NCBI RefSeq assembly: GCF_001194135.2
Contig: NC_068989.1
Span: forward strand, 81,118,217-81,170,672
DNA length: 52,456 nt
Origin: Octopus bimaculoides
Taxonomy: Eukaryota
Direction: 5' to 3'
The notes under the pieces are model-generated. The model did no database searches. It had not been told where the DNA came from and saw only the letters and a list, made by a program, of their open reading frames with translations. This document shows positions 2,880-48,680 of this stretch, in pieces (positions within the stretch are counted from its first letter, which is position 1; every line of letters starts with the position of its first letter). Position numbers and translations under genes: made by a program.

Positions 2880-3205
2880 ATTAACGTTTCGGTATTTCCC
2901 GTTATTTGTTGAAACCACCAATTCCGGTAGTCGTTCGGTTGAACTCGGCAATGTCCGTCGAATCAGTTTGAATGCATTAAGTTTCCTGGTTGGACGCTTC
3001 AACTGTTTTTAGTTGCCGCTACAAACGTCATCCAAAACGTCGCACTATTATTTCAGCAGGCAGACATCAGTGAAGAGAAATACATATATACGAGTAGTAA
3101 ACCGTCTTTGGTTGATTCACAATCAACAGTTTCTTTCAATCCAGTCTTAGGATAGAGAGAGAGAGAGAGAGAGAGAGGTAGAGATCTATTTCAAAGGAAG
3201 CGAAA
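2880..3205 (+). promoter_or_regulatory. Probable LUC7L promoter/5'UTR, CpG-enriched, with (GA)n tract
   Basis: Many CpGs compared with the flanks; (GA)n at about 3152-3177 just upstream of the ATG; transcription start not determinable from sequence. Confidence 0.4.
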
Positions 3206-3266
3206 ATGTCGGCTCACGATCAGATTCGTGCTATGCTCGATGAATTAATGGGCACAGGTCGAGATG
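3206..3266 (+). CDS. LUC7L: LUC7L coding exon 1
   Basis: ATG 3206; MSAHDQIRAMLDELMGTGRD(G); donor ATG|GTAAGT, phase 1. Confidence 0.95.
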
Positions 3267-4088
3267 GTAAGTAAAAAACATGAACATGAAACAAAAAAAA
3301 AATCCTTGCGAAATTTTTATAAAAAAAAAAAAATAATTAATTTTCCTTCTCTTGTCTTCAGTTTTTCGTCTCTTTCTTCCCTCCACGCAAGCTCTTTTAC
3401 TTGTTTCAGTTCTTTTGACTGCGGCCATGCTGGAGCACCGCCTTTTTTAGTCGTGCAAATCGACCCCGGGACTTATTCTTTGTAAGCCTAGTACTTATTC
3501 TATCAGTCTCTCTTTTTGCCGAACCGCTAAGTTACGGGGACGTAAACACACCAGCATCGGTTGTCGAGCGATGTTGGGGGTAAAAAACACAAGCACACAC
3601 GCATATATATACATATATACGACGGATTCTTTCAGTTTCCGTCTACTAAATCCCCTCAAAAGGCTTTGGTCGACTCGAGGCTATAGTAGAAGACACTTGC
3701 CCAAGGTGTCACGCAGTGGGACTGAACCCGGAATCATGTGGTTGGTAAGCAACCTACTTACCATACAACCACTCCTGCGCCTATATTATATTTTTAAAAC
3801 CATTTTCCCCCCCAAATCAACGAAGGAGAGAAAAAAATCATATCGAAATCTCCAAATATCAAAATAATTTTGTTACTAATTTTGAAAAAAAAATCTAACT
3901 CGAGAAATTTGAACTAAAGTCGCCTTTTTTTCATCTTCAAAAATTGTGTAAATATATTTTTGGTAATTATAAAAAAGCTGTATCGATGTCGGTGTTTGGA
4001 TGATGTTTGTTCGTTCGTTGATTTTTGTCTGCTAATATAAGTATGAATGTGTAAATTTTTTCCCCTACCCCTTGTACATATATGTATG

Positions 4089-4126
<38 letters not shown>

Positions 4127-7100
4127 GAAAGACTTGGAATATGAGACATTGAAATCTCTCTGTCTGTTGAAAAATTTTGGCAGTGACGAACGGCCATATT
4201 GAGTCGTTTTTACTCTTGTTCAGAATCAAACGCAAAGCAAATTCAGTTAAATAACACCAGACTATCCTCGTTTATAGCATTATTTTTGTATGTTTTAACT
4301 ATTCTCTCAATCATCGACATTTTATTGCTAATGTTCCCCCTATTTACGTTGAGATTTATTTTCATATTCTTACTATCTGCGCTAAATTCTGGTTAATTGC
4401 ATTTCTGGTTTCTTCTAATTAAAAAAGGATAATCATCGGTGAATGACTACGTGTCACTCAGTTGTTTCTACAATGGATTTTATTGATGAATTTTTAATTT
4501 GAAATAGCAAAACACCTCGAAATAATTTAGCTGACGGGTCAAACTCGTATATATATATTTTCAATTATGATTTTTTAAATTTAGACCTGCGTGTCACTCA
4601 AGGATCTAAAAAGCTGGTTAAGATATTTATCTCACACATCTTTATATGTCACAGTCCTCCTTGACGAACTTATTGATATTAAATTAATGTGATTTTTGGG
4701 TTTCGATTTTTTATTGAAATAAAAGTATGTTCAAACTCCCGAAGATAAAAAGAACGACAACAAAAAAACAACTGTCGAATATGTTCCACTTAATTGATAG
4801 TGCTTAATTGTCATATTTCCATTGTATTTTCTGTTTGCTTTGTTCTCAATAATTGACTAATTATAACAATAATGCTGTTAATGGATCGTTGCGTTATTTT
4901 TTTCTGGTGTTTTTCTTTTTAAGTTTCCTAATTATTTTCTTTTGTGCAATTGAATAATGGCGTAGTATTTGGAATCTGGTGTTTTGGTCGATATAGTTTG
5001 AAGACAGCTAACCTCTTATATTTATATATATATATATGTATGTATATAAAAAAAACTGGAAACCTATATAAATTATAATTGTCAGTTGCATTTACAGCAA
5101 GCTTATATTGTTTTATTAGATACATACAACTGGTCTTTTTAGCAACTGCAGCACCCCTTTACGTCTTCATCATGTAATAACCCCTCCTCTCCATCACTTG
5201 GCAGTGAAAGTAGTTAAGAAAGAACACCATTCGTTTTTGCGTCTTTTTACACTGCAGAAAGAAGATCCCTTTTTCTTGGTCGTCAGACCACAGTCTTCTC
5301 GGTTTCACATTCTTACAATATTTTTTAGTATTTTTAAAAAATTCTGTTTATTATTATAAGGGTAAAAATTGGTTCAGAAACCAAATGGTAGTCTAGTTTT
5401 AAACAGCTACAATGATAATGGATTATATATCTCGTTGGTTTAGGACGAATTGCTGACCTGATTTTCTCTTACACACAGACACACACACACACACACGTAA
5501 TTTCCTGTAATTGCTTATAGGTAATCGGTTTGCGACTAGAAGTCAAAAGGCAGAAAATAGAATGTGCATTATTTATTAAAGCTTCATTGCGATAGGAAAT
5601 TTTCCCAAGTACGTCATCGGAATAAAATATCTTAAGTGCATTTCATTGTGTAAGGTTCCTTTGTAGAGGCAGTCGTCAGCAAGCTTAATCGGATCCGTTT
5701 TTATTATATTACACTGAGAAGTTAAGCACTAAAATAAAATAAGATTTTTTTAAAAATCCACATATATAAGATCAACACTATGTCCAGTAGTGTCTATTAT
5801 ATATTAATAAAACTGCATTATGTAATGTATTTGAATGTTCCATTGTTAGAATAATAAAATAACTTGAAAATCGGATAAATCATATTAGTAAATATTTCAT
5901 TTAAAGGTATGATGAGATATCAATTAGATCTTTAGTGTCTGAATTGCATTTCATAAAAATTTGATCGTGTATATATTATATATATTGATCTGTGAAGTAT
6001 ATAGATTTCTTTCATATTTTCTGGAAATTGCAATTTTATCTTATGAAATATAACAGTATAAGTTGACATTGAGTTAGCATTATGAAAATAAGCAAGTTTT
6101 TTTTTTCATGTTTAATTCTAAATTGTGAATTGCCAATTGTTCCTGCTTCAGATTTAAGGGTTTTGTTGCTTCCTTTTCGAAAGTTTTAAGAATACAAAAT
6201 GGCTGAATTAAGTCCTTGGCAGAAAAATGGTTGGTGAAAATACTTTGTTGAATTGTTGCTGGAATAATTTCTGCTAGTAATGCTGCTGAAAAATCTTTAG
6301 GTTGTAGCAAATACTGATTTTTATTTTAACCAGAGGTATTGAAATATTGCTATTTTACAAAATGTTGGTGATTTGTTCAAGTATTGAACAAACCTCTTAG
6401 GGTTGAGGACTTCAAGTATATAAATAGTACCTATTATTATATTCATATGAATATATAAATGTTTTTACTTTTAAGTAGCTTTTTCTTTTTTTTTTTAACA
6501 CTTTATACACAAATACTGCTTTTTTTTTTTTTTTTAATTAATGACATTTGGCTTGATTTTCTAGTGTGGATTTCTTAGATTTTAGGTATGTATTTGTATA
6601 AAGTTGCTGCCAAAATTCTGCCTGAATACCTTATTTATTAATGTCAATCCCTATTTTTAAAGGGGAGAATGTTATGTGGTGTTATCAAGTCAATATTGCA
6701 AAGCTGGTGAACCCCAAGCCGTGAGTTCAATTTCCTAACTATTTCCAGAGGATCCTTGTTTGCATTATTTCCAAGTAATCACTGTCATGCTACTACTGCT
6801 ACTACCTCTTCTACTGTGTTGGTCCAACAAACTGGTCTTTATTATGAGTGTAAATTTTTTTTGTTTGTAATTTGGCATGTAATGTATATTGTCAAATTAA
6901 TTTTTCTCCTTGATAAATAATTGCTGTTTATATTTGTAATTGGCTCTGGCTATTTTAACAAGAGAGAAAAACATTATTAGGTAATTTGTTTTAATTATAA
7001 TTTGTAAGTGAAATAATGCTAATTTTTATGTAGTTAGTTGTTTTCTTTTGTTTAAAAAAAAGGGAAGCAATGAGCTGGAAATCTTTTTTCAGATGAGGGC

Positions 7101-10100
7101 TCAGGTTGAGGCCACACCATCATACCCTGGCGGCAATAGGTGGGGATTTTGCTGTTGCAAAAATGGATTAATCGCAGTGTGTATTTAATGTATATACTCA
7201 GTGGAGATTGCACATAGTTACTGTGTGCAATGTTTTGACTTTTTTAATACATATTTTTAAAATAAATTATAACTATTTTAGACTGACATTTTACATCATA
7301 AAATTCATTTAAATTTCTGCTTACATTTTAACCAGTAACTTTTTGATAATTTAGGAATATTTCATTTGCATAAATTTTAATGCCATTAAAAATACTTGAG
7401 ATAGTGATTTCACTCTAAAATATATAACCCTTCTCAATGTTTTAACTTACTGATGGAATATAATTTTAAAAAAAGGGTTTGTATTATATAGAAACACACC
7501 CAGTTCTACTTTACAACTAGAATAGTTAAAATTAGATCCTTCCAAGGTTATCATTTACTATTTAAAAACATTGATCATAGGAATCACTCTATTACTGAAC
7601 AATTAGTTGTTTTTTTTTTCCTATTAACTTCAATTTCCAAATATACTGTAGCTTTGTTGAATATATTGTTAGTTTACTTATGCTATGGTAGATTAATCAT
7701 GAATTTATGCTATAAAACTCTAGCTGTTGTATGATGAATGCTGAAGAAAGCATGGTGTCCTGATCAAGTTCTGGTAAGTTTGCACAATAACATGTCAATG
7801 TCATCATGATATGGATACAAAAGCAGTTTTCAAAATAATCTGCTTTAACTCTTTCATTGCTTTTCCCCCTTCATCTTTTCATAACTACCCTCATTATTTT
7901 ATTGTGCTGACATTTTGCTACAGGCTAGTAGTATTGATGATCAACAGATTTTGAATGAATGCTCCTGTTTGCTTACCTGGTTACTTAAATCTGTCATACT
8001 TTTGGGAAGCTTACGTAAGTGTAACCTTAGTCTGTTTTTCCCACCCCAAATGTGTCAGCACCCCATGCCACTTAAATTTTTTTTTTTTTAATCTCTTTTC
8101 ATGAAACTTAGCTTTGGTTAGTGCCTCATTTCTTCAGCAATATAAAATGGAAGAGTTAAAGCAAGTATTTTTATTCCTTGTAAATGGACTTGTTCTGCAG
8201 TATGAACATTAGAAATCAAAAAGATTCCACAGGTTGCTACAAGGCAGGATTTCAAACCAGTGATTTGATAAGTACTTTTTAAATCTTTGTGTGCTCACAT
8301 CAAGGAAATCAAAATTATATGGATTGATTTTTTTTTTTTTTTTTTCTATTTTTCTCAATTTATATTTTGGTATTCCTAGATTTTCTCTTAAACTTTTTTG
8401 CCTTGCAAAACTTTGTGGAACCTTTTTATCCTCTATTAAAAAAAAAGAAAAAGAAAAAAAGTAACAAAGTCCTCGAGTTGATAATTCTTAGATAGTACAT
8501 TAATTTATCTTTCTACAGCAATTTATAGTTTTGTCATTAAAGGAAATGCAAGCAAGATGTTTGCTTTCACATTCTTGAAAACTCTCTATATATGTATTCT
8601 CATTAGTTTTTACATCTTTCTCTCATGCTCACATGGGTTTGGTCACAACCCTTAATTGTTTTTCAAGTAAGGGATCTCTTATTTCATATATGTCTTTAAA
8701 GGCACAAATATATTTCTTCTGACTAGATGTCAGATGTCTTTCAAAAAATAAACAAGCTAATCAGAATTGTAATGATATCGATTCCATAAAACAAAAAAAG
8801 AGGTCTTTGTTATTTTCTTTTTGTTTTTTTTAATAGTAAAAAAAAGATACCCTTTGCAATAAAATGCTTTATCGTTATTGTTACTGAGAAGTTTGGCTAT
8901 GCTGGATTGCTTTTAGGGGAAAACAACAAGTACAAGGTGAAGTTTGATGATCCTCGGGTATGTAAGAGTTTCCTGCTTGGCTGCTGCCCCCATGACATAC
9001 TCTCGAGCACGGTGAGTTTCTCTTAAATATTTACTAATAAGGCTGAGCAAAATGATTTCTTCATGCTGATTTTGGTACGTAGTTGGCTTGATAGTGTGTA
9101 TTCTTTAGGGGCTCATTTTCGGGATTTTCAATTTTAATAAACTACAACTATATATGTAGATATCAGATTTAAGTTACAAATACTTTGTAACTATTGTATG
9201 GTAAATTTTACAGTTTAGCTTTTACAAGAAATTAAGTGGATGACACATAGTCACAGAAAATTATAAGCATATGTGTATGTAGTCTTCATAAACTTTTTGG
9301 TTTTAACTTAAATTTCATGTGCTATGCCAGATATATATGGCGTTATTTTCTTGAACTGAATCTTCAGCCGCTTTTTGATTTCCAGTTAGAGCTGTTGCAG
9401 TTATGTGACTAATGCCTTTGCAATGATACTCATTACTTAATTATCATTTGGCATATTCTAAAAGTTGCAGTATTGTAGCTGTGAAATCATAGATTTATCT
9501 ATGCTGTTTTATTATAAAAACAGAATGGTTGAACATTTGTGAAAAGATATTTAGAACTATCTATTAGAATATAAAAGCATTGTTTTTCTAATAACTGAAT
9601 GCTTAGTAATGTTATGTCTAAGAGTATTAGTTGTTTAACATACAATTTTAGGCCAAATGTCCTTGAAAGGCTTTTGACAATGCTTACTTAAAAAATCCTC
9701 ATTGTTAGCAATAGAGAAAGCAGTTTGTAATTTCATTAGTTAACGTGCTGTATTAGAACAACTAAACTTAGAAGTGTTAAGTACTAGGTGTAATTCAGTA
9801 CTACGTCTTTGTTAGATGACACTTTTTTTTCTTTTAGGGTTTTCATGCATGGCAAGGGCATCTGGTCAGTCTACACTGCAAACATTTTGACTAATTAAAA
9901 TTGTTACAGTCAGATGTAATTACAAATTGATAATGAAGAATTGACTGATTGTTTTCAAAATGATGCGGCAACTATCGATCTTGTATAGTGTGCTGCTGTT
10001 ATTTTTTCTAATTTGACAAGTTTCTAGTTAATATAGATAGCTATAAATTCAGTCATTGTGTTGATACATTAGAACTATCTAATATTGTTTCCATCTCTTG

Positions 10101-13100
10101 CTGCCAGCTGCTAAGTCATGCTGGGAAACCCTATTATATGTTTACATTCTCGATCATTGGAACAGGGTTGCTTTGTCTTCATTTCAGTAAACCATTGCTA
10201 CAGGTTTGATGGAGTCTTCTTGGTACTAGCAAATTGCTATTAAATCAGTGCTTTTTACTACATGTGAGTAGCACTATCAACTGTTTTTGTGATGATAGTT
10301 TGGGATTAGCTTTGGCTTGTAAGTTGACTGGTTTGGTTGGGTGGGAGGGTGTAACAAAAACAAAATGCCCACTGACTATATATATATTATATATATTTGC
10401 TTTGGATCTGCAAGTACAGTTTTAAGAATTTTTTTTTTCATGCATGGTTTCAGCAATAGAATTTGTCCCCCCAACACACGTCAGAAAATCACAACTCACT
10501 ACTTCACATTTTTTTTTTCTCTCCACTTTGTCTATTGGGTTACATCAGGGAATAAGTAATGTGAAGAACATTCTAGTTGGATTACTGGTACTGAAGGTGC
10601 TTTAGAAGAGAAGAAAATATTTTTTTAGTACATTTTGAATTGATTCAACAGCAGATATTCTAGTTTTTTTTTATTTTTTGAATCGTGGATAATTTTAATC
10701 AGTTAATTGTATTTTTATCTCTTGCAGCGCATGGATTTAGGAGAATGTCCTAAAATACATGATTTAGCCCTCAGAGCTGACTATGAACAAGCAACCAAAG
10801 GAAAAGACTATTATTATGACATTGATGTGAGTAAAGCTATGTTTTTATTTTAACACTTATCTTAGATGCTTCAAATTATCACCTAGTTGCTAACTGGATT
10901 GATAATAAGGGTACTAATCTCAGGACCTTGTGCACACAAAACAAAATATCTAATTTTAAACCTAAAGCATTGGCTTTTGTTTCTTGTCTTTAAACAGTGA
11001 TCTCTGGGTTGGCCTTCCTTTTCCAAACTCTTTATTTTTGGCTATCTGTCATAGCTTAGAAGGCACTTACAGGTTTCTCTATCTCAAAGGAGGAATCTTA
11101 TCTGAACTTGCTAGCTACTGATCTATCACTTGCACTTCTGACAATCATAATAAACTATTTCATCATGTTGAGTCTTTTCCCCGGTGGTTACCAATATTGT
11201 TTTCATAAGTCTAGCTCTGCTAGAAATCTTCATATCACAGCTAGTGATTTCAAGAACTTACCTAAAAGTATTGTTGCTTTTGATATTAGCAAAGCCTTTC
11301 CACATGTCTGATGTAATCACCTTAGCAAAGCTGTTTGTCTGTAGGCTGTACTTGAGTATGTCAATAGGATTTTCTCCAACTTGCATTCTATCTTCAGCAG
11401 TTGTTAGTCTAGTCCTTCTCTACACCAATAGCTCACTATAGTGTTATTCCAGTGAAACACTCCATGCAACAATGCCTAGTTTTTGATGGAACAGGAACTA
11501 CTTCAGCTCCAAACAGATGTTGATTCTTTGCAAACTATAAGTGCCTTTCTCTCTAGAACACTTGTCAAACATGTCTGGGACAATAACTCCTTTATACATT
11601 CTATGATCCTGTCCAGATAACAAAAACTGACCAATTAGAAAGCTCACTAGCACAATGATAAATTGTATCCTTCCACTTGTTTCTAAATGTCATTCAAACC
11701 TGTCTCCCAATAATTGGAGCTCTTTGGTGCTCCCATTTTTCTTCAGAAATTTTAAGTTAAATATTGAATCTCACCAAAATAAAAAAATTTTTTTTGAAAG
11801 AAAGCAAAATTGTGATTCTTCTTCTCATGCAAAAACATGTCTATATTTTATATTTCTTTAGGCTATGGAACATCTTCAGTCGTTTATTGCTGAATGTGAC
11901 AGAAAAACAGAACTTGCAAAACGACGGTTGAAAGAAACCCAAGAAGAGCTTAGTGAAGAAGCAAACCAGAAGGTAAGTGTTTACTGATAGTTAGCTTTTT
12001 AATCCCTATCACTTATTTTCTTTTGCAACCCCTTAAATCACTAAAACAGTTGGGTCTGGAGTCGTTTCTTAAAATGGGAGGACAAGCATTATATAATGCC
12101 TAAATTTCTCAAATATTGGAGAAACAATCTATACATAATTTCATCTGGCAATTTCTACAAAAAAAAACATCTTAGTTCTTTAGGTTCTTTCTTTTTTTAT
12201 ATAAACTGGCCAGTAGGTGTGGTGGAGTGAGGGTTCATGCTACAGGGAGAAATATTTTAAAGAGTTTCATTTCTAATTTTGTGTTTGTTTTGAAAAGAAA
12301 TAATTTGTGGGATGATGTCATAAAACATTTACATTTTTCAGAAATTTTTTTTGTGTGTGTGTATTAGGAGTATATTATTTAATTTTAGAAAATGTGTAGA
12401 AAGGGAAGTGTTGAGGGTGACACATAGCTAATGTATATTAAAATTGTATGTCAAGTTACAAATAACAATTGTAAAATGTTTTTTGGTTAGTCAGTATAAG
12501 AGACTTTCTGTGGCAGCTAAATAATTTTATAAAGAAGGGTACAATCATGGTTAGCTGTTAACCTTAGCAAGGAGAAGGCTTGCTATCTAAGCTTGACAGT
12601 CATTTTTGAGAAAAAAAGGCAAACAGGAATGGCAGCAAACTCAAATGGGTGCTTTTGGAAGTTTTCTTTTCTGAGCAATTTTTATTCCTTGGTACTATTA
12701 ACTTTCCACTGGATTTGTGTGAAACAGCTTTATGATTATCACTGAGGCTACTGTTACTGCTATCTCTGTTATCATTGATAGTCATTCTTCAAGACAACAT
12801 ATTCTTTTCTTTATTGTTTATCCAGTCATTTGGCTGATGTGTCTTATGTAGAAAAGTGAAGCATCAAGAATGAAGAAATGTAAATGAACTGAAGCAAACT
12901 CTTCTAGCTAACTGAAGGCATGAAATAATGGACATTTTTAGAACCAAAATTAATTGATGTGCAGGCTTAGGCAAAAGTGGTCATATTGATATTGCAATTT
13001 TTAGGCAAAGTCCTGATGATGAGGAAAGATAGAAATTCTTTTAAATAAACAGAATTTCTACAAACATTTAAGAACATATTTCACAACATATCTTTATAGA

Positions 13101-15431
13101 TTGTATTTATGAACTTGAGTCCCTCCATAAAATTCCTCAAAATATGGTTTTGGCCCATTACTGGTAATACATAAGTACAAAAGCATCAAGCCACCACTTG
13201 TATCTTGCAATATTATCAAATGCCATTTTTACATTTGCAACTGCTTCAGATTCTACTAAAAATTCAGTCATTACAACCATAATACATAATAGATTGACAT
13301 TTCAATTGATTGAGAAAGCATTGAACATTTAATTTGCACTTGTTTTGCCATTAATATGAAATTGCTTATTACATGCATTTCTTATAATTATAGAGGCTTC
13401 TTTGTTACAAGAATGTAATTGGGTCATTATAATGCAAAATATGTTTCTTCAGAAGTGCAGACTATAAATATAATGGTCCTTAATCTATACTCTCAATTTG
13501 TGATGGCTTGTTTGTAGGCCCTTTAAACGTTCAAAGATTTTCATTAAAATTTTTGAAGTTATTACTGCTACTAAATGATTTTATTCTGAAAAAGAATTTT
13601 TTTTTAAATCATTGGAAATGAGATAATTGAGGTTAGAATTTCTCAATAGAATGTGAAAATTATCTTAATAAACTAAATTTTGATGTTGAAGCACAAATGG
13701 CTGGGTTCCTACATTGCCTGATAATGTTGTTTGTTGAAATTGTCATATGTCCCCTCCAACACTTTGATCTTAGATCCTCTGCCTGTGTTTGGCTTAATGG
13801 TCAACTGTAAAATGATAGCAGGAATAACAGCACACTTGAAGAATAAAACTTTCAAAAATATTTCTTTCTATAAAACCAGTGCAATGGTATTTTAATCTCG
13901 TGAATTGAGTTAAAAGGTTAGGTCATAATTGTAAAATACATAATGTTGATTGCAGATGTGAATGTCCATCTAAAATAAGAGTTCATTTGTCATATTTTTA
14001 TTTCTAGGCTGAAATTATTCATCAACTTGGTGAACAAATTGGTACTAAATTAGCAAAAGCTGAGACTGTTGGAGCTGAAGGACATGTAAATGAATCTCTA
14101 AAATTGATGGAAGAAGTAGAAGAGTTAAAAAAACAAAAAGGACAAGCTGAGGTAATATTTCATGATTGGATTTTTTTTTTTAATGTTTTATTTCTTTTAG
14201 TAAGATTTTCAAACATTGAGATATTCAATTTGTAAAGTTTTAATCAAATCAGTGGTAACATTTAATTGAATAATTTAATAATAAATTTATAACATCCAAA
14301 TTGAACACAGAATAATAAATTACCTTGGTAGACATTGAAACTGAATCCAAATATCTTTGGAAAATTCAGTTTGTACTGATTGAGGAGTGCACTTCAACAT
14401 GTTATGTTGCAGCATTAGGACTTATTGATAACTTATAGGTCATTACATAAACAAGCATACTTGCTTTTTATTGATTTGTTTGTTCATAAATTTATTTCAC
14501 ATTAAGAGCAAGTAATTTTTTTCTGGTGAGCTGAAAAAGCTTTACTGTAACACTTAAATGAGTTAAATGTAACTAGGAGTAAAGGTATTCAGATTAGGAC
14601 CAATTAGTTAATGTAAGTTTTTAGAACAGTATTTGTTTGTGATGTAAATATTATTTTCTTTACAGATTGAATATAGAAATTCAATGCCAGCTTCCAGCTA
14701 TCAACAACAGAAACTCCGTGTTTGTGAAGTATGTTCAGCTTATTTGGGTATCCATGATAATGATAGACGGCTTGCAGATCATTTTGGAGGCAAATTACAT
14801 CTTGGCTTCATCACAATTAGAGAAAAATTAGAAGATCTCAAGGTAATCAGTGATTTAATTATTCTGTCAATCTCTTGAATTTAATTTGTATTCCTCTTTC
14901 TTTAATCATTTTGCAATTTCTTCAGAAAAGCGTTGCTGAAAGAAGAGCTCAGAGGGAGAAGGAACGAGAAGAACGTCGTAAAAGAGAACAAGAAAAAATA
15001 GGTGACAGGGAAAAGGAAAAACGAAAGAGCCGCAGTCCTAGCCGAAATCATCGCAGTAGCAGAAGTCATAGCAGAGATAGAAGGAAACGGTCTCGGAGTC
15101 GTAGTCGAAGGTCAGTATTGGTTATTGCTTTTAGAAAAATATAAATTGCTTAAATTACTTGCAGATGCCTTTCACGTAGAAAATGAAGTTTCTGTTGATA
15201 TCATATAACAAAGAGCTTCAAAAATTAAATTTTACTTAGGCCAATGGCTAATATTTTCTTGCTGTTTTTATTTTTCATTTCCTCCGTTGTATATAATTAG
15301 ATTTATTGTTATATTGTAATTCTTTATCTTTCAGATCTTGCAAACGTTCCCGATCTCGGTCTCATTCTCGACGTTCAGGATCTCGTTCAAAGCGCTCACG
15401 GTCTCGTTCTCGATCTAGATACTCGAGGTGA
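3206..15431 (+). CDS. LUC7L: LUC7-like U1 snRNP splicing factor (LUC7L/LUC7L2 type), complete; join(3206-3266,8917-9011,10728-10826,11862-11972,14008-14151,14666-14842,14926-15110,15335-15431), 322 aa
   Basis: Manual splicing gives MSAHDQIRAMLDELMGTGRDG-ENNKYKVKFDDPRVCKSFLLGCCPHDILSSTRMDLGECPKIH (ZnF1) ... QQKLRVCEVCSAYLGIHDNDRRLADHFGGKLHLGF (ZnF2) plus an RS tail. All introns are GT-AG and phases are consistent (969 nt). The N-terminus is of the LUC7L/LUC7L2 type, not LUC7L3. Confidence 0.96.
3388..3781 (-). mobile_element. tRNA-derived SINE, family A, near full length, antisense in LUC7L intron 1
   Basis: Head ggcgcaggagtggttgtatggtaag...ggttcagtccc (A/B boxes); body recurs many times in the window. 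Confidence 0.9.
6663..6720 (+). other. Candidate LUC7L poison cassette exon (58 nt, frameshifting)
   Basis: ctatttttaaag|GGGAGAAT...AAGCC|gtgagt. Confidence 0.45.
7093..7139 (+). other. Candidate LUC7L poison cassette exon (47 nt, in-frame TGA)
   Basis: tcttttttcag|ATGAGGGCTCAGGTTGA...AATAG|gtgggg. Confidence 0.35.
7724..7773 (+). other. Candidate LUC7L poison cassette exon (50 nt, in-frame TGA)
   Basis: aaactctag|CTGTTGTATGA...TTCTG|gtaagt. Confidence 0.35.
7924..8014 (+). other. Candidate LUC7L poison cassette exon (91 nt, immediate TAG)
   Basis: ctgacattttgctacag|GCTAG...CTTAC|gtaagt. Confidence 0.5.
8917..9011 (+). CDS. LUC7L: LUC7L coding exon 2
   Basis: ttttag|GG GAA AAC...; ENNKYKVKFDDPRVCKSFLLGCCPHDILSST; donor GTGAGT. 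Confidence 0.96.
10728..10826 (+). CDS. LUC7L: LUC7L coding exon 3
   Basis: RMDLGECPKIHDLALRADYEQATKGKDYYYDID; cag|...|gtgagt. Confidence 0.96.
11050..11620. mobile_element. Decayed LINE reverse-transcriptase fragments (CR1/L2 superclade)
   Basis: + frame YQYCFHKSSSARNL...IVAFDISKAFPHV* resembles the RT motifs QYGFR..RST and ALDISKAFDRV; stops present. Confidence 0.5.
11862..11972 (+). CDS. LUC7L: LUC7L coding exon 4
   Basis: AMEHLQSFIAECDRKTELAKRRLKETQEELSEEANQK; tag|...|gtaagt. Confidence 0.96.
14008..14151 (+). CDS. LUC7L: LUC7L coding exon 5
   Basis: AEIIHQLGEQIGTKLAKAETVGAEGHVNESLKLMEEVEELKKQKGQAE; tag|...|gtaata. Confidence 0.95.
14666..14842 (+). CDS. LUC7L: LUC7L coding exon 6 (second zinc finger)
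   Basis: IEYRNSMPASSYQQQKLRVCEVCSAYLGIHDNDRRLADHFGGKLHLGFITIREKLEDLK. Confidence 0.97.
14926..15110 (+). CDS. LUC7L: LUC7L coding exon 7 (RE/RS region)
   Basis: KSVAERRAQREKEREERRK...RSRSRSR; cag|...AG|gtcagt, phase 2. Confidence 0.93.
15335..15431 (+). CDS. LUC7L: LUC7L coding exon 8 (RS tail, TGA 15429-15431)
   Basis: tttcag|A TCT TGC AAA CGT TCC CGA...; (R)SCKRSRSRSHSRRSGSRSKRSRSRSRSRYSR*; the stop overlaps a possible donor. Confidence 0.88.
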
Positions 15432-16470
15432 AATAGTGCTTTGATGTGAGAATTTGTACATACTGTCTTTAACTGAAAACTTAAGATCTCGGTAAGGGAG
15501 GCTGCATGGTTAAAAAAAAACAAAAGTGGAAGACAAGGAGATAATAAAAATACTAAGTTCAGAATGTCTGGTCACATTTTGCTATTATAGGCTTCCACTG
15601 GACTTTGCTAGTTAAGACTTTTTATTAAAGATTTATATATCTTAATAAACTTGGTTGATAAAAACTGATTTTATTTAATATATTTTCCCCCTACAAAGTC
15701 AAATCTCTTTTACTGGAAAAGTCTCTTGCTTTCAGATTTGACATCATTCACATGAGGAGGTTTGCTTGAAAATTTATAACAGTTAAAGTATTAGATCATA
15801 AAGAATTGGCAGGTGAACAACTCGATGTCAAGTGACATTGTATTTAAGGATAGATTTAAGTGTAGCCCTTAAGTTGTATAGTTTTGTTTAAATTTCTAAA
15901 TAAAATTGTTGACAATTGACTTGGTCTGGAATGGTTCAATAAATTTGCTCTTTATATAAAAACATTAGTAAATCCACTTGTTTTCATTCACAAATTGTTC
16001 ATACCAGTATTCTATGGTTGTCTTAGGTGACATTTTCAGATGAGTTTCATAGTGCTTTCAGATTAACAGGAGATTGAATCTAATATTTTATTAGTTTCAT
16101 TAGAAATATAGAGCTTGTGCATTGTAAATAAGGTCTGTCAATTCTGGCCCAAGTCTATAATAGGTAGCCTTTTTCAAACATAAAACATTTGTAAACTTTT
16201 TCTCAAGTTAAAAAGTTAACCTTCATGAAATTAGAAAGATATATTACATTGAGCTCAGTACAAGACTTGTTTATTTTGAGTCGAGGTTAGTTAAAAATGA
16301 AATGCCTTCCGTAGATTAATGAATTTTTTGGTAGTTTGATTGTGATTCAGTTTAATTTTCTTTTAAATGTCAGATTATAAAATTGAAAATTCAGCTTCTT
16401 TATCCATTTGTAAAACAAATCTGCTCCACTTTGTGAGGAGCAAAAAAGTAAAGGCTGACAAATTTGTATA

Positions 16471-17605: not shown

Positions 17606-20600
17606 CTAAAAATTTAAATATCAAGGTATTAACAATAAAGCATATGAAAAAATCTTATTATATAGTACAAATGATTTATGACTGCTATTGTTGATCTTAG
17701 AGCTATCATCAAAGTGCAGTGATGATAGCAGTGTGCACTGGTTAAGAGTATGATATACTGAGCAAATATTGAAGAAATGATAAACAAGTTTACATCATTT
17801 GTTCCTATGTATGTTTCACCACTGGCTGTGTATTGGATGCTTTATCAAAACTAATCATCAGGGAACACTTTAGTTCCCTGTAACACTGCAATAAAATGTT
17901 ACCCAATGATCAGTTGTGATTCCACTGGAAATCCAGGCCATCTCAATGATGCAATGTACACAGGAACAAATATGAACTTGTAATTTCTTCTACATTTGAT
18001 TTGTATATCAAAACAAGTAAAACTATTAAGTACATAGTATTTGCAAAACCACCTCACAAAAACATTATGTAAACTGGTGTTTATTTGTCTGTTTCTTCAA
18101 GCTAGCAGAGGTTGGATGAATATTTTGAGGTATTTTATTGTCAAATATCCTTGCTAACCTTTACCTCTTTTCAAGTTAGGATGTCCTCATCTTTGTTGTT
18201 AACACATTTCGGCTGATATACCCTCCATCCTTCATCAGTTGTACATGGAAAAATACCTTAGGAATGAGAACCCAGGTTCAAAATTTCCCCAAGACACCTG
18301 ATAAAGGCTGGAGGGTATATCAGCCGAAACGTGTTAACAAACAAGACAAGGACAAATATCCGTCAAATGTAAATAATGTACATAATTTACTCATCTCTTA
18401 AATATAGAACTGTATATATATCCATCGTCAGCTGCCTAACAGGTATCATTCTTGATATATATATGATATGTTAATGTCTACTTCACACCTGCACATCAGA
18501 CAAAGGTGTGTTGGATGCAGAGTTTTCATAGCAGATTAAGAAAACCCAGATATACTTCATGACATGTCTCAGCAAAGCCATTATTTACAAGCAATGAATG
18601 AAACATGCAAAGTGGACACAAGGGAAATGCAAAATCACTTAGACAAACACTTGCACATATATGTAAACTCACTTCTAAGGTAACAGGGACAACCATTAGT
18701 TGGCATAAAGACATATATGATGGGCTTCTTTCAGTTTCCGTCTACCAAATCCACTCACAAAGCTTTGGTTGGCCCAAGTTTATAGTAGAAGACTTGCCCA
18801 AAGTGCTCAATAATGGGATTGAACCCAGAACCATGTGTTTGGGAAGCAAGCTTCTTAACACACAGCCTTGCTTGTACCTTTAATAGGTGCACGTCCTTAG
18901 TATAGCTAGGACCATATCCCAAAGACAATACTTTCGATTCAGGGCCAAATGATATTTCTCTCACCAACAGGCTTACATTCTACAAGGGTCAAGGTAAGCC
19001 ATGGCGGAGTATCATTTCCACATCTGGAACAACAGCAGCTAGACACTGCATCCAGAAGAAATCCACTTGATTGATTGGTATTTAGTCATCAATGACTCCA
19101 GCTTCTCATCTGCAGGTGTGCTGTCTCTTCTCCACATTTTGTATGACTACAAGTCAGCAAATTATATATATATATATATATATATAATTATTATTATTAT
19201 CATTGTATATAGTTATTGTTTAAATGTTCACTTCTCCAAGCTTTATGGGTTTCACAAAAGAAACTTTTGTTTCAAACACTGGTAAAATAACAACAAAGTT
19301 AATTGAATGCTTGATTATTTTCAAACTTAATGTATTTCATTAGAAAAGTAATGGAAGCGTCTTAACTCTTTTGTAACTATTGTTGAGGCAAGTGAATTTG
19401 GAATTTGAAATCTGAAATGGAAATCGAACCGAATCCAACGACTGGAACTCATGCCAACTTTTCCTTCATTGGACACTAAACTCTGCTTGCGAAGACCAGG
19501 TGGGGCAAGTGAAATCATAATTGAACCACACTCAATGACTGGTCACCACGCCAGTGGAGCACTAACAGCACTGTCAAGCGTGTTCATTGCCAGAGCAGCT
19601 GTCTGGCTTCCGTGCTAGTGGCCCGTAAATAGCACCATTTGAGCATAATCATTACCAAGGTTGCCTTCTAGCACTTGTGCTGGTGGCACGTTAGAAAATC
19701 ATTTGAGCGAGGTCATTGCCAGTGCTGCGGGACTGGCTCCTGTGCAGGTGGCACGTAAAAAACACGTTTTTGAGCATGGCCGTTGCCAGTACCATGTGAC
19801 TAGCCCTCATGCCGGTGGCACGTAAAAGCACCCACTACACTCAAGTGGTTGGCGTTAGGAAGGGCATCCAGCTGTAGAAACTCTGCCAGATCAGATTGGA
19901 GCCTAGTGCAGCCTTCTGGCTTGCCAGTCCTCAGTCAAATTGTCCAACCCATGCTAGCATGGAAAGCGGATGTTAAACGACGATGATGATGATGATTTCT
20001 GTTGCAGTACACTGCCTTTGATTTGATTAATTTTAAAAATAGTAAAGAATTTAATTGCAATAACTTTGTCATTATTAAACTGGTGTTTGGGACATAAATT
20101 AACATGGAATTTTGCTGGAAGGTTTAGATTTAAATCACTTAGAAATAAGGAATTTGTATCATAGTAAAAGTAAATGCAAAGTGTTACTTACCTGAGGAGA
20201 AATAAAAGGAATTGTAGTCCCTTGCATGATATCTGGGTTCAGAAGTAACGGAACGGTGCTTGCAGTAGAAGCTATGGAACCAGAAGTGGAAGAAGAGTTG
20301 TTTACAGTCACTGAGTCTGTAATGTTAGGGCGTGGTGCAACTGGTGAACTGTTTACTGACATGTTGTCTGCCATGCTACTGCGAGAGGCAACTTTAGGCA
20401 AGGGTGGCTGAAGAATGTAAGCGGATGTCATGGTGGCACTATTCCCTCCAACCAATGGACTTTCTGAACGAGGAGATTTGCCAATTCCTGAAAAAATAAA
20501 AGAAACAATAAACGGTGAAGATAAGGTGATGATTGAACTGATTAAGGATTAAAACCTGATCAATGTCTGGATTAATAATAAATAATAATTAAAGATATTG

Positions 20601-47300: not shown

Positions 47301-48642
47301 GGTGGTTGGTGTTAGGAAGGACATCCAATCCACTCTGCAGGGTGGTTGGTGTTAGGAAGGACATCCAATGGTAAAAACTGTGCTGAAACAGACACAGAAG
47401 TCTGATGCAGTCTTCTGCTTGGTCAGCACTTGTCAAACCATCCAACCCATGCCAGCATGTAAGGTGCACATTAAACAATGACGATGATGATGATCATCAC
47501 CATCGTTTAACATCCGCCTTCCATGCTAGCATGAGTTGGACGATTTGACTGAGGACTGGTGAAACCAGATGGCTACATCAGGCTCCAATCTGATTTGGCA
47601 GAGTTTCTACAGCTGGATGCCCTTCCTAACGCCAACCACTCAGAGAGTATAGTGGGTGCTTTTATGTGTCACCCGCACGAAGGCCAGTCAGGTGGTACTG
47701 GCAACGGCCATGCTCAAAATAGTGTATTTTATGTGCCACCCGCACAAGAGCCAGTCCAGGGGCACTGGCAACGNNNNNNNNNNNNNNNNNNNNNNNNNNN
47801 NNNNNNNNNNNNNNNNNNNNNNNNNNNNNNNNNNNNNNNNNNNNNNNNNNNNNNNNNNNNNNNNNNNNNNNNNNNNNNNNNNNNNNNNNNNNNNNNNNNN
47901 NNNNNNNNNNNNNNNNNNNNNNNNNNNNNNNNNNNNNNNNNNNNNNNNNNNNNNNNNNNNNNNNNNNNNNNNNNNNNNNNNNNNNNNNNNNNNNNNNNNN
48001 NNNNNNNNNNNNNNNNNNNNNNNNNNNNNNNNNNNNNNNNNNNNNNNNNNNNNNNNNNNNNNNNNNNNNNNNNNNNNNNNNNNNNNNNNNNNNNNNNNNN
48101 NNNNNNNNNNNNNNNNNNNNNNNNNNNNNNNNNNNNNNNNNNNNNNNNNNNNNNNNNNNNNNNNNNNNNNNNNNNNNNNNNNNNNNNNNNNNNNNNNNNN
48201 NNNNNNNNNNNNNNNNNNNNNNNNNNNNNNNNNNNNNNNNNNNNNNNNNNNNNNNNNNNNNNNNNNNNNNNNNNNNNNNNNNNNNNNNNNNNNNNNNNNN
48301 NNNNNNNNNNNNNNNNNNNNNNNNNNNNNNNNNNNNNNNNNNNNNNNNNNNNNNNNNNNNNNNNNNNNNNNNNNNNNNNNNNNNNNNNNNNNNNNNNNNN
48401 NNNNNNNNNNNNNNNNNNNNNNNNNNNNNNNNNNNNNNNNNNNNNNNNNNNNNNNNNNNNNNNNNNNNNNNNNNNNCCTGTTGTAGTCATTTCTTTAGAT
48501 ATTATCTTTTGTCCGACATCATAACCAGAAGTAAGAGGTAAGTCTACAACTTCAGGAGGCGTCAATGGCTTAACACTTGAATTTGAATTATTGGTTTCTG
48601 GCACATTCTCTGAAAGAATTCATAAATATTTATATATTGTTT

Positions 48643-48680
<38 letters not shown>

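Follow-up and report, generated by a model that had tools for sequence, protein, structure and literature searches.

Does the first intron of an octopus LUC7L gene hold an exon through which the gene could limit its own expression? The question was raised by a 52,456-nt stretch of the Octopus bimaculoides genome (contig NC_068989.1, positions 81,118,217 to 81,170,672; the window), whose plus strand carries a gene for a LUC7L/LUC7L2-type factor of the U1 snRNP (small nuclear ribonucleoprotein). Over 18.2 kb the window matches the O. bimaculoides assembly GCA_001194135.2 (L001) with 100% identity. The gene was identified as the LUC7L orthologue by tblastn with a LUC7L probe and by protein search. 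An initial annotation of the window had described LUC7L and LUC7L2 in human as auto- and cross-regulated through exons carrying a premature termination codon (PTC), which agrees with published work (PMC11842720). It had proposed an invertebrate, multi-exon version of this circuit from five segments of intron 1 (6565-6585, 6663-6720, 7093-7139, 7724-7773 and 7924-8014; candidates 1 to 5). In human, LUC7L2 and LUC7L promote inclusion of LUC7L's PTC exon and of the homologous LUC7L2 exon AE2. The two exons have one shared 5' splice site (5'SS) with a 5'SS Balance of +3, and minigenes demonstrated that this right-handedness is needed for the regulation (PMC11842720). The definition of Balance used here and the human exon value were taken from that paper. 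Our results suggested that candidate 2, 6663-6720, is a 58-nt alternative cassette exon that makes the octopus LUC7L mRNA unproductive, with feedback from LUC7L. We give this reading a probability of about 0.72. The features that it involves are as follows (a slash marks an exon-intron border).

3206-3266, plus strand: LUC7L exon 1 coding sequence, MSAHDQIRAMLDELMGTGRD plus 1 nt, donor ATG/GTAAGT (from tblastn, the sequence and Logan mRNA contigs)
3267-8916, plus strand: LUC7L intron 1, 5650 nt, phase 1
6548-6850, plus strand: core part of intron 1 that is ultraconserved in octopods, with 12 differences from Argonauta hians in 301 aligned bases (4%)
6643-6662, plus strand: 3' splice-site region of the putative poison exon, ending in TCAATCCCTATTTTTAAAG/, 20/20 identical in Argonauta
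6663-6720, plus strand: putative poison cassette exon (candidate 2), 58 nt, 58/58 identical in Argonauta
6718-6726, plus strand: 5'SS of the putative poison exon, GCC/GTGAGT, Balance +3, right-handed
6721-6792, plus strand: intron stretch just 3' of the exon, 1 substitution in 72 nt against Argonauta, with CCTAAC..TTTCCAG and CTA repeats
8917-9011, plus strand: LUC7L exon 2

The last three bases of exon 1 are ATG. The splicing 3267^8916 and the other exon borders are matched exactly by two Logan mRNA contigs (L004, L005). The span 5500-8916, which had been described as the region of interest, is the 3' 3.4 kb of this intron; the full intron 1 is 3267-8916.

The orthologous LUC7L loci of O. sinensis, O. 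vulgaris and Argonauta hians were aligned over 3100-11000. At the 4-fold sites of the coding exons, which served as the neutral yardstick, Octopus and Argonauta differ by 40.5% (32/79), and most of intron 1 is unalignable between them. Within the conserved core, the 150 nt from 6643 to 6792, covering candidate 2, its 3' splice site and 72 nt downstream, carry 1 substitution against Argonauta, and 6600-7000 shows 100% identity with both O. sinensis and O. vulgaris. On the flanks of the exon about 250 nt of intron is conserved, and the octopod conservation spans about 650 nt in all, with a 7% difference from Argonauta at 7140-7200. The stretch 6721-6792 is presumed from its sequence to be splicing-regulatory. 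The donor 9-mers of candidates 1, 2, 3 and 5 are unchanged in Argonauta, and candidate 4 keeps its GTAAGT core beside a 3-nt insertion; 5'SS-like sites elsewhere in intron 1 are not conserved there. The region of the exon is colinear and orthologous in the four octopod genomes, and no copies of any part of 5500-8916 were found elsewhere in the window, which together argue that it is not a transposable element or short interspersed nuclear element (SINE).

The alignment of intron 1 was extended from the octopods to an oyster, Saccostrea cucullata (locus L012), and candidate 2 proved to be conserved above the background; none of the other four segments was detectable in the oyster. The sole significant match of the element was window 6624-6727, and it lies in the oyster intron 1 (blastn E=1.7e-12). 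The homologous oyster exon is at L012 2291-2347, is 57 nt long and contains an in-frame TGA TGA. The similarity runs from CCCTATTTTT(A)AAG/, the core of the 3' splice-site region common to octopus and oyster, to /GTGAGTT, which is one strand-specific exon plus its two splice sites. The acceptor CCCTATTTTTAAAG/ and the donor /GTGAGT are conserved in both Argonauta and oyster, and the similarity stops at both borders. The oyster donor reads TTC/GTGAGT and also has a Balance of +3. The exon is 58 nt long in octopods, 57 in Saccostrea, an inferred 58 in Crassostrea and an inferred 59 in the Logan open reading frame (ORF) P0269 described below, and each of these forms leads either to a shifted frame or to an in-frame TGA.

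The constraint on this exon is non-coding. It shows 0/58 changes against 40.5% at 4-fold sites, its length varies between 57, 58 and 59 nt, and its stops fall in differing frames; no conserved ORF was found in the element. A search of 5500-11000 against Rfam had no match at E<=1, and 6630-6800 has no stable RNA fold (z = +1.84 against shuffled sequences), which argues against a hosted structured non-coding RNA. A metagenome pattern scan for the exon core gave 0 matches.

The position and length of the exon predict what its use would do to the mRNA. Splicing of 6663-6720 between exons 1 and 2 would shift the frame, and translation would stop at a TGA at 8945-8947 in exon 2, leaving a predicted 49-residue peptide without both zinc fingers. 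This TGA lies 64 nt before the exon 2/3 junction and has six more junctions downstream of it, so the mRNA is expected to enter nonsense-mediated decay (NMD). The donor GCC/GTGAGT has no exon-side consensus and a full consensus at +4 to +6. It belongs to the site class that is enhanced by LUC7L/LUC7L2-type proteins in the U1 snRNP. More LUC7L protein would then give more inclusion and less productive mRNA, a negative feedback of the kind demonstrated in human for the PTC exon of LUC7L and for LUC7L2 AE2. In this reading, the best supported, the NMD-substrate step and the 5'SS-recognition step rest on sequence rules plus human and mouse experiments. We infer the inclusion of the exon in octopus, the NMD of the resulting isoform and its control by LUC7L protein, and likewise the self-limitation step in molluscs.

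Protein annotations and transcript-derived sequences of other molluscs bear on the use of this exon. The RefSeq protein XP_022316485.1 of Crassostrea virginica (P0035) begins MGAFSCAVTQSNLKGDEGQP-R-ENSKYKV. Translation of the Saccostrea exon, begun at the ATG that closes exon 1, gives MGAFSCAVIQSNLKGDEGQF, and 18/20 residues match the N-terminus of XP_022316485.1. This match indicates that the XP_022316485.1 model holds exon 1, the poison exon and exon 2. Version.2 of the same record is a 336-residue protein starting at Met54 (MDLGEC...), and a Met54-start isoform is also annotated in Magallana gigas, C. angulata, S. echinata and Ostrea edulis. A Met54-start 'isoform X2' of 269 residues exists in octopus too. 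O. bimaculoides has it from two transcripts (XP_014767579.1 and XP_014767580.1), and it is also annotated for O. sinensis (XP_029641416.1) and O. vulgaris. Such isoforms are what an annotation pipeline yields when the canonical ORF is interrupted upstream.

The Logan ORF P0269, which was found with the predicted octopus peptide of exon 1, candidate 2 and exon 2, reads MSAHDQIRAMLDELMGTTRD/GSYLMGCYPGIFEKLVKVQ/AVSF.... After an intact exon 1 it has M-CY..KLV in common with the translation of the octopus exon and GS..P..FE in common with that of the oyster exon, and the AVSF that follows is the translation of GCC/GTGAGTTT. Read in this way, P0269 is the junction of exon 1 to the poison exon with the downstream intron retained, in a third mollusc. 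Four further proteins were set aside. P0117 and P0041 were rejected as alternative-exon N-termini, as they contain only a retained 3' end of intron 1. P0254 (MLSLQ-RMDLGEC), known as a protein sequence only, is probably a retention of the 3' end of intron 2, and P0270 is a read-through from exon 1 into the intron.

The exon lies at the place of a studied vertebrate exon. In octopus, Argonauta, oyster, guppy and rodent it occupies the same intron in the same phase (intron 1, phase 1, upstream of exon 2), between the N-terminal helix exon and exon 2, as do the vertebrate LUC7L PTC exon and LUC7L2 AE2. Between guppy and rodent LUC7L the best conserved non-coding block lies in intron 1 (90% over 164 nt, with about 80% in coding exons). 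It holds a 71-nt exon ending in GCC/GTGAGT, the same 9-mer as in octopus; the mouse Luc7l poison exon 2 is 71 nt long and frameshifting (PMC11648925). The Balance is +3 in all of them, with GCC/GTGAGT in octopus, Argonauta, guppy and rodent and TTC/GTGAGT in oyster. The 3' splice-site context CCCT.TATTTT is also similar between the mollusc and vertebrate exons. The mollusc exon resembles the vertebrate ones in being short, frameshifting and conserved above the coding exons, in the identical 9-mer, in an element containing CAGTGTGTAT a few hundred nt downstream, and in isoforms that start at the next in-frame Met. It differs in its length, 58 nt (57-59) versus 71 nt, in giving no significant nucleotide alignment with them, and in lying, in octopus, in a locus with a single LUC7L/L2-type gene, which would make the regulation auto- rather than cross-regulation. 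Regulation by LUC7 proteins has been demonstrated only in human and mouse cells. With these features it looks like a new, deeply conserved member of the LUC7L poison-exon class and the counterpart of the human and mouse exon. As a side observation, the Peromyscus californicus protein P0146 (L013), annotated as LUC7L (375 residues), is encoded by an intronless 1128-nt ORF and is 87% identical to the human LUC7L probe; the intronless ORF indicates a retrocopy and not the parental LUC7L gene.

The downstream element just mentioned is a short motif.

7173-7184, plus strand: the 12-mer CGCAGTGTGTAT, the sole 12-mer that octopus, oyster and guppy share in intron 1

The same 12-mer is present in Argonauta, and the rodent form is CAGTGTGTAT. 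It occurs once per intron and always 270-450 nt downstream of the poison exon (window 7173-7184; L006 8388; L012 2622; L014 2921; L015 1876). Any shared 12-mer was obtained in 0.3% of shuffles (P = 0.003). In vertebrates the motif sits at the 3' edge of a second conserved block. It reads as a weak right-handed 5'SS-like site, GCA/GTGTGTAT, and every lineage has a plausible acceptor 60-110 nt upstream of it; the octopus one is the acceptor of candidate 3. The 12-mer may provide the donor for a second cassette exon (7093-7176), or it may be an element or decoy bound by U1 or an RNA-binding protein (RBP), or a site for a UGUGU-binding protein. A long-range pairing of the 12-mer with sequence upstream of the exon, considered by eye, was dropped because the octopus partner is deleted in Argonauta. 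Judged from these comparisons, the module of exon, splice sites and CGCAGTGTGTAT is older than the cephalopod-bivalve split, and probably older than the protostome-deuterostome split too.

Several observations weigh against the proposed unproductive, self-limiting exon and its link to the vertebrate one. No octopus transcript with a 3266^6663 or 6720^8917 junction was obtained, and exact look-ups in the protein collection returned none of eight predicted octopus isoform peptides (exon 1 with candidate 2 and exon 2, exon 1 with candidates 2 and 3, alternative ORFs of candidate 5 and of candidates 4 and 5, GTG and TTG starts, the exon 1-exon 2 stop, and retention of intron 2). The X2 models could instead begin at an internal promoter. 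Neither blastn, nhmmer in both directions nor windowed Smith-Waterman comparison gave a significant match between the mollusc and vertebrate exons, and the vertebrate exon was not the top match in direct mollusc-vertebrate homology searches; orthology thus rests on position, the 9-mer and the 12-mer. The Crassostrea exon, moreover, is open in frame from the alternative ATG at the end of exon 1. This last point belongs to a different account, in which translation starts at that ATG and the exon supplies a new N-terminus that lacks the SmE-binding helix, a role proposed for AE2 of human LUC7L2. A product of exactly this kind is XP_022316485.1, and the ATG is present in octopus, oyster and guppy. 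However, the octopus and Argonauta frame closes within the exon (MGRMLCGVIKSILQSW and a stop), the 57-nt Saccostrea exon runs out of register, no frame is conserved because the length varies (57/58/59/71 nt), the canonical ATG upstream would be used first, and RefSeq itself replaced the XP_022316485.1 model by the Met54-start form. We therefore consider an alternative coding exon improbable.

The conserved block could also be an enhancer or another element acting at the DNA level, with the five segments being chance pseudo-exons of an AT-rich intron. The statistics of such segments given below fit this idea, and so does the octopod conservation of about 650 nt, which goes far beyond one exon. 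It is made very improbable by the oyster, where conservation is limited to a single, strand-specific exon unit with AG and GTGAGT as its borders, by the translation of the exon sequence in the annotated oyster protein and in P0269, and by a vertebrate counterpart that is an experimentally studied exon. A last alternative keeps the NMD-type exon and assigns its control to other factors, such as PRPF40A-like U1 components, a LUC7L3-type paralogue or tissue-specific RBPs, so that it would be a switch and not an autoregulatory loop. Knock-down of PRPF40A strongly lowers inclusion of the mouse Luc7l exon (PMC11648925), LUC7L3 represses the human LUC7L exon (PMC11842720), and the conservation of about 250 nt of flanks and of a distant UGUGU-containing 12-mer exceeds what a 5'SS needs. 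On the other side, the feature that is invariant from mollusc to mammal is the right-handed 5'SS, which is required for LUC7L2 control in human. Control mainly by other factors is unlikely in our view, and the two views are not exclusive. Taken together, the reading frames, which close or shift in octopus and Saccostrea, and the invariant 5'SS class argue against a coding N-terminus and against control mainly by other factors, and the unproductive, LUC7L-responsive exon at 6663-6720 is the explanation that we prefer.

The other four segments had been proposed on the same grounds as candidate 2, namely a pyrimidine tract with AG, a GT donor and a premature stop. The borders are as described in 5/5 cases, with AG before and GT after each segment, and insertion of any of the five between exons 1 and 2 leads to a premature stop; 7724-7773 has a poor pyrimidine tract, with a score of -6.2 in a position weight matrix (PWM). 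The stop lies within the segment in four of the five (6565-6585, 7093-7139, 7724-7773 and 7924-8014), and 6663-6720, which is free of stops in the exon 1 frame, works through a frameshift. The splice sites were scored with this simple PWM, using the weakest candidates as thresholds, and compared with dinucleotide shuffles, the antisense strand and other introns. The region contains 11 acceptor/donor pairs, the shuffles 8.3 +/- 4.4 (27% of them reach 11) and the antisense strand 11; no enrichment over shuffles, antisense strand or other introns was found. A premature stop more than 55 nt before the last junction is given by 93% of all AG..GT segments of 15-200 nt in intron 1 and by 97% of the scored ones. 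With pairs at chance level and stops in 93-97% of arbitrary segments, neither criterion discriminates. Counting AG..GT segments with stops is without evidential weight; the coordinates were right and statistically empty. The non-random property of the region is its conservation. The four segments are as follows.

6565-6585, plus strand: candidate 1, 21 nt, TAG/GTATGT, Balance 0, splice sites conserved in Argonauta
7093-7139, plus strand: candidate 3, 47 nt, TTTTTTCAG/ ... TAG/GTGGGG, both splice sites conserved in Argonauta
7724-7773, plus strand: candidate 4, 50 nt, CTG/GTAAGT, weak acceptor, AG and GTAAGT core kept in Argonauta
7924-8014, plus strand: candidate 5, 91 nt, TAC/GTAAGT, Balance +2, donor 9-mer and acceptor identical in Argonauta

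Candidate 1 showed no similarity in oyster and is without independent support as an exon; from its sequence it cannot be told from the conserved upstream flanking intron of the poison exon. The body of candidate 3 is variable against Argonauta (23% substitutions and a 10-nt indel), and the deep constraint in its neighbourhood is the 12-mer at 7173-7184, 37 nt beyond the segment. Candidate 4, with 34% substitutions against Argonauta, is near neutral divergence and has no independent support. Candidate 5 keeps its splice sites in Argonauta around a body that is 26% diverged, with indels, which is exon-like; it is a possible octopod-specific second alternative exon. Starting at the ATG that ends exon 1, it has no stop in the exon 2 frame. 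Candidates 4 and 5 are conserved within octopods alone, and modestly. At best these four segments are accessory, and 7093-7139/7176 and 7924-8014 are plausible extra alternative exons. What survives of the multi-exon circuit is thus the NMD-type exon 6663-6720, supported by octopod and oyster conservation, by mollusc transcripts and by GCC/GTGAGT. The presence of at least five such exons was not established, and a multi-exon module in intron 1 is possible.

A second conserved element was found in the next intron.

10092-10322, plus strand: second ultraconserved block, located in intron 2, with 5 of 231 nt substituted against Argonauta

Positions 10100-10299 are 100% identical in O. sinensis and O. 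vulgaris, and 10300-10399 about 92-99%. The block contains strong acceptors before 10108 and 10188 and a conserved donor CAT/GTGAGT at 10263/10264, and an exon from 10188 would open with an in-frame TAA. By these signals it is probably a further poison exon. No counterpart was found in oyster, nor in intron 2 of guppy and rodent; a weak oyster match (E = 0.002) located in oyster intron 1 was treated as chance.

These elements can be put together in a broader picture. LUC7 genes would carry a bilaterian-ancestral two-part device, in which a short frameshifting exon, its right-handed 5'SS C/GTGAGT frozen for more than 550 million years, is combined with CGCAGTGTGTAT as a second right-handed donor or a U1/RBP decoy. 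Octopods would have added the unproductive exons 7924-8014 and 10108/10188-10263, giving a multi-sensor gene, and the poison exon would have begun as a tandem duplicate of exon 2. We regard this picture as possible and put it forward tentatively. Its last part is a weak hint. In the exon 1 frame the poison exon translates as SYLMGCYP in P0269 and SFFLCCNP in oyster, and exon 2 as SFLLGCCP; the octopus exon 2 and poison exon both start with GGGA(A/G)AA. At the peptide level the likeness to exon 2 has P = 0.001 for P0269 and 0.06 for oyster, and nucleotide tests were not significant in octopus or oyster.

Two known systems help to place the exon. It resembles the ultraconserved poison exons of SR and hnRNP genes in being a non-coding cassette exon of a splicing-factor gene, with constraint above synonymous sites and a PTC upon inclusion. 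According to Lareau and Brenner (PMC4379411), such unproductive-splicing regulation is evolutionarily flexible. In contrast, the LUC7L exon can be recognised in different molluscan classes and probably in vertebrates, and its proposed sensor is a 5'SS class rather than exonic enhancer binding. The second system is ENOX1/Enox, for which PMC13100119 describes an ultraconserved pseudo-5'SS downstream of an alternative exon, conserved across animal phyla. The likeness lies in a short 5'SS-like motif 3' of a conserved exon that decides between productive and PTC-containing mRNA, and ENOX1/Enox is by analogy a possible model for the 12-mer at 7173-7184. Unlike that pseudo-5'SS, the LUC7L 12-mer GCA/GTGTGTAT is a weak 5'SS match. 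LUC7L is named in the main text of PMC13100119 solely as a knock-down control. In the literature searched, no paper linking unproductive splicing of LUC7L to invertebrates was found, which is not proof of novelty.

The remaining exons of the gene are listed here.

10728-10826, plus strand: LUC7L exon 3
11862-11972, plus strand: LUC7L exon 4
14008-14151, plus strand: LUC7L exon 5
14666-14842, plus strand: LUC7L exon 6
beyond exon 6, plus strand: two more arginine/serine-rich (RS-rich) LUC7L exons

The annotated 322-residue Octopus LUC7L ends in RYSR and a stop (window 15335-15433 region), where TCGAG/GTGAAA could be a donor. A 388-residue Logan protein of a close relative (P0001) has about 65 extra RS-rich C-terminal residues, and this extension suggests a choice of alternative 3' terminal exon or intron retention at the LUC7L C-terminus. 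The initial annotation was right that 5500-8916 is free of SINEs, as the repeat families of the window have no copy there. A SINE-like repeat sits in the 5' part of intron 1, at about 3393-3800, with about 12 further copies in the window (e.g. at 18705, 22461, 34796, 44550 and 52339). O. sinensis and O. vulgaris lack it at the orthologous position, which indicates a recent insertion in the O. bimaculoides lineage. The convergent neighbour gene on the minus strand, from about 17580, specifies a Sec7-domain protein some 2000 residues long, of the large ARF guanine-nucleotide exchange factor (ARF-GEF) type; Pfam PF12783, PF01369 and PF23325 were found in the orthologous loci. GC content is 17% in the 1-kb bin 48001-49000, against 29-42% elsewhere in the window, and this bin is probably a long AT-rich simple repeat.

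In conclusion, poison exons of splicing-factor genes are usually thought to turn over between lineages, and the LUC7L exon is recognisable in more than one molluscan class and, from its position, its splice-site identity and the 12-mer, probably in vertebrates as well. The module, made up of 58 nt, an invariant 9-mer and a 12-mer, is a small natural system for testing how LUC7 proteins read 5' splice sites, and it points to a second ultraconserved element in intron 2. If our reading is true, the Met54-start 'isoform X2' proteins of octopus and oyster in RefSeq would be accounted for as products of unproductive transcripts, and feedback through 5'SS handedness would be an ancient property of U1 snRNP homeostasis rather than a trick of the vertebrate paralogues.

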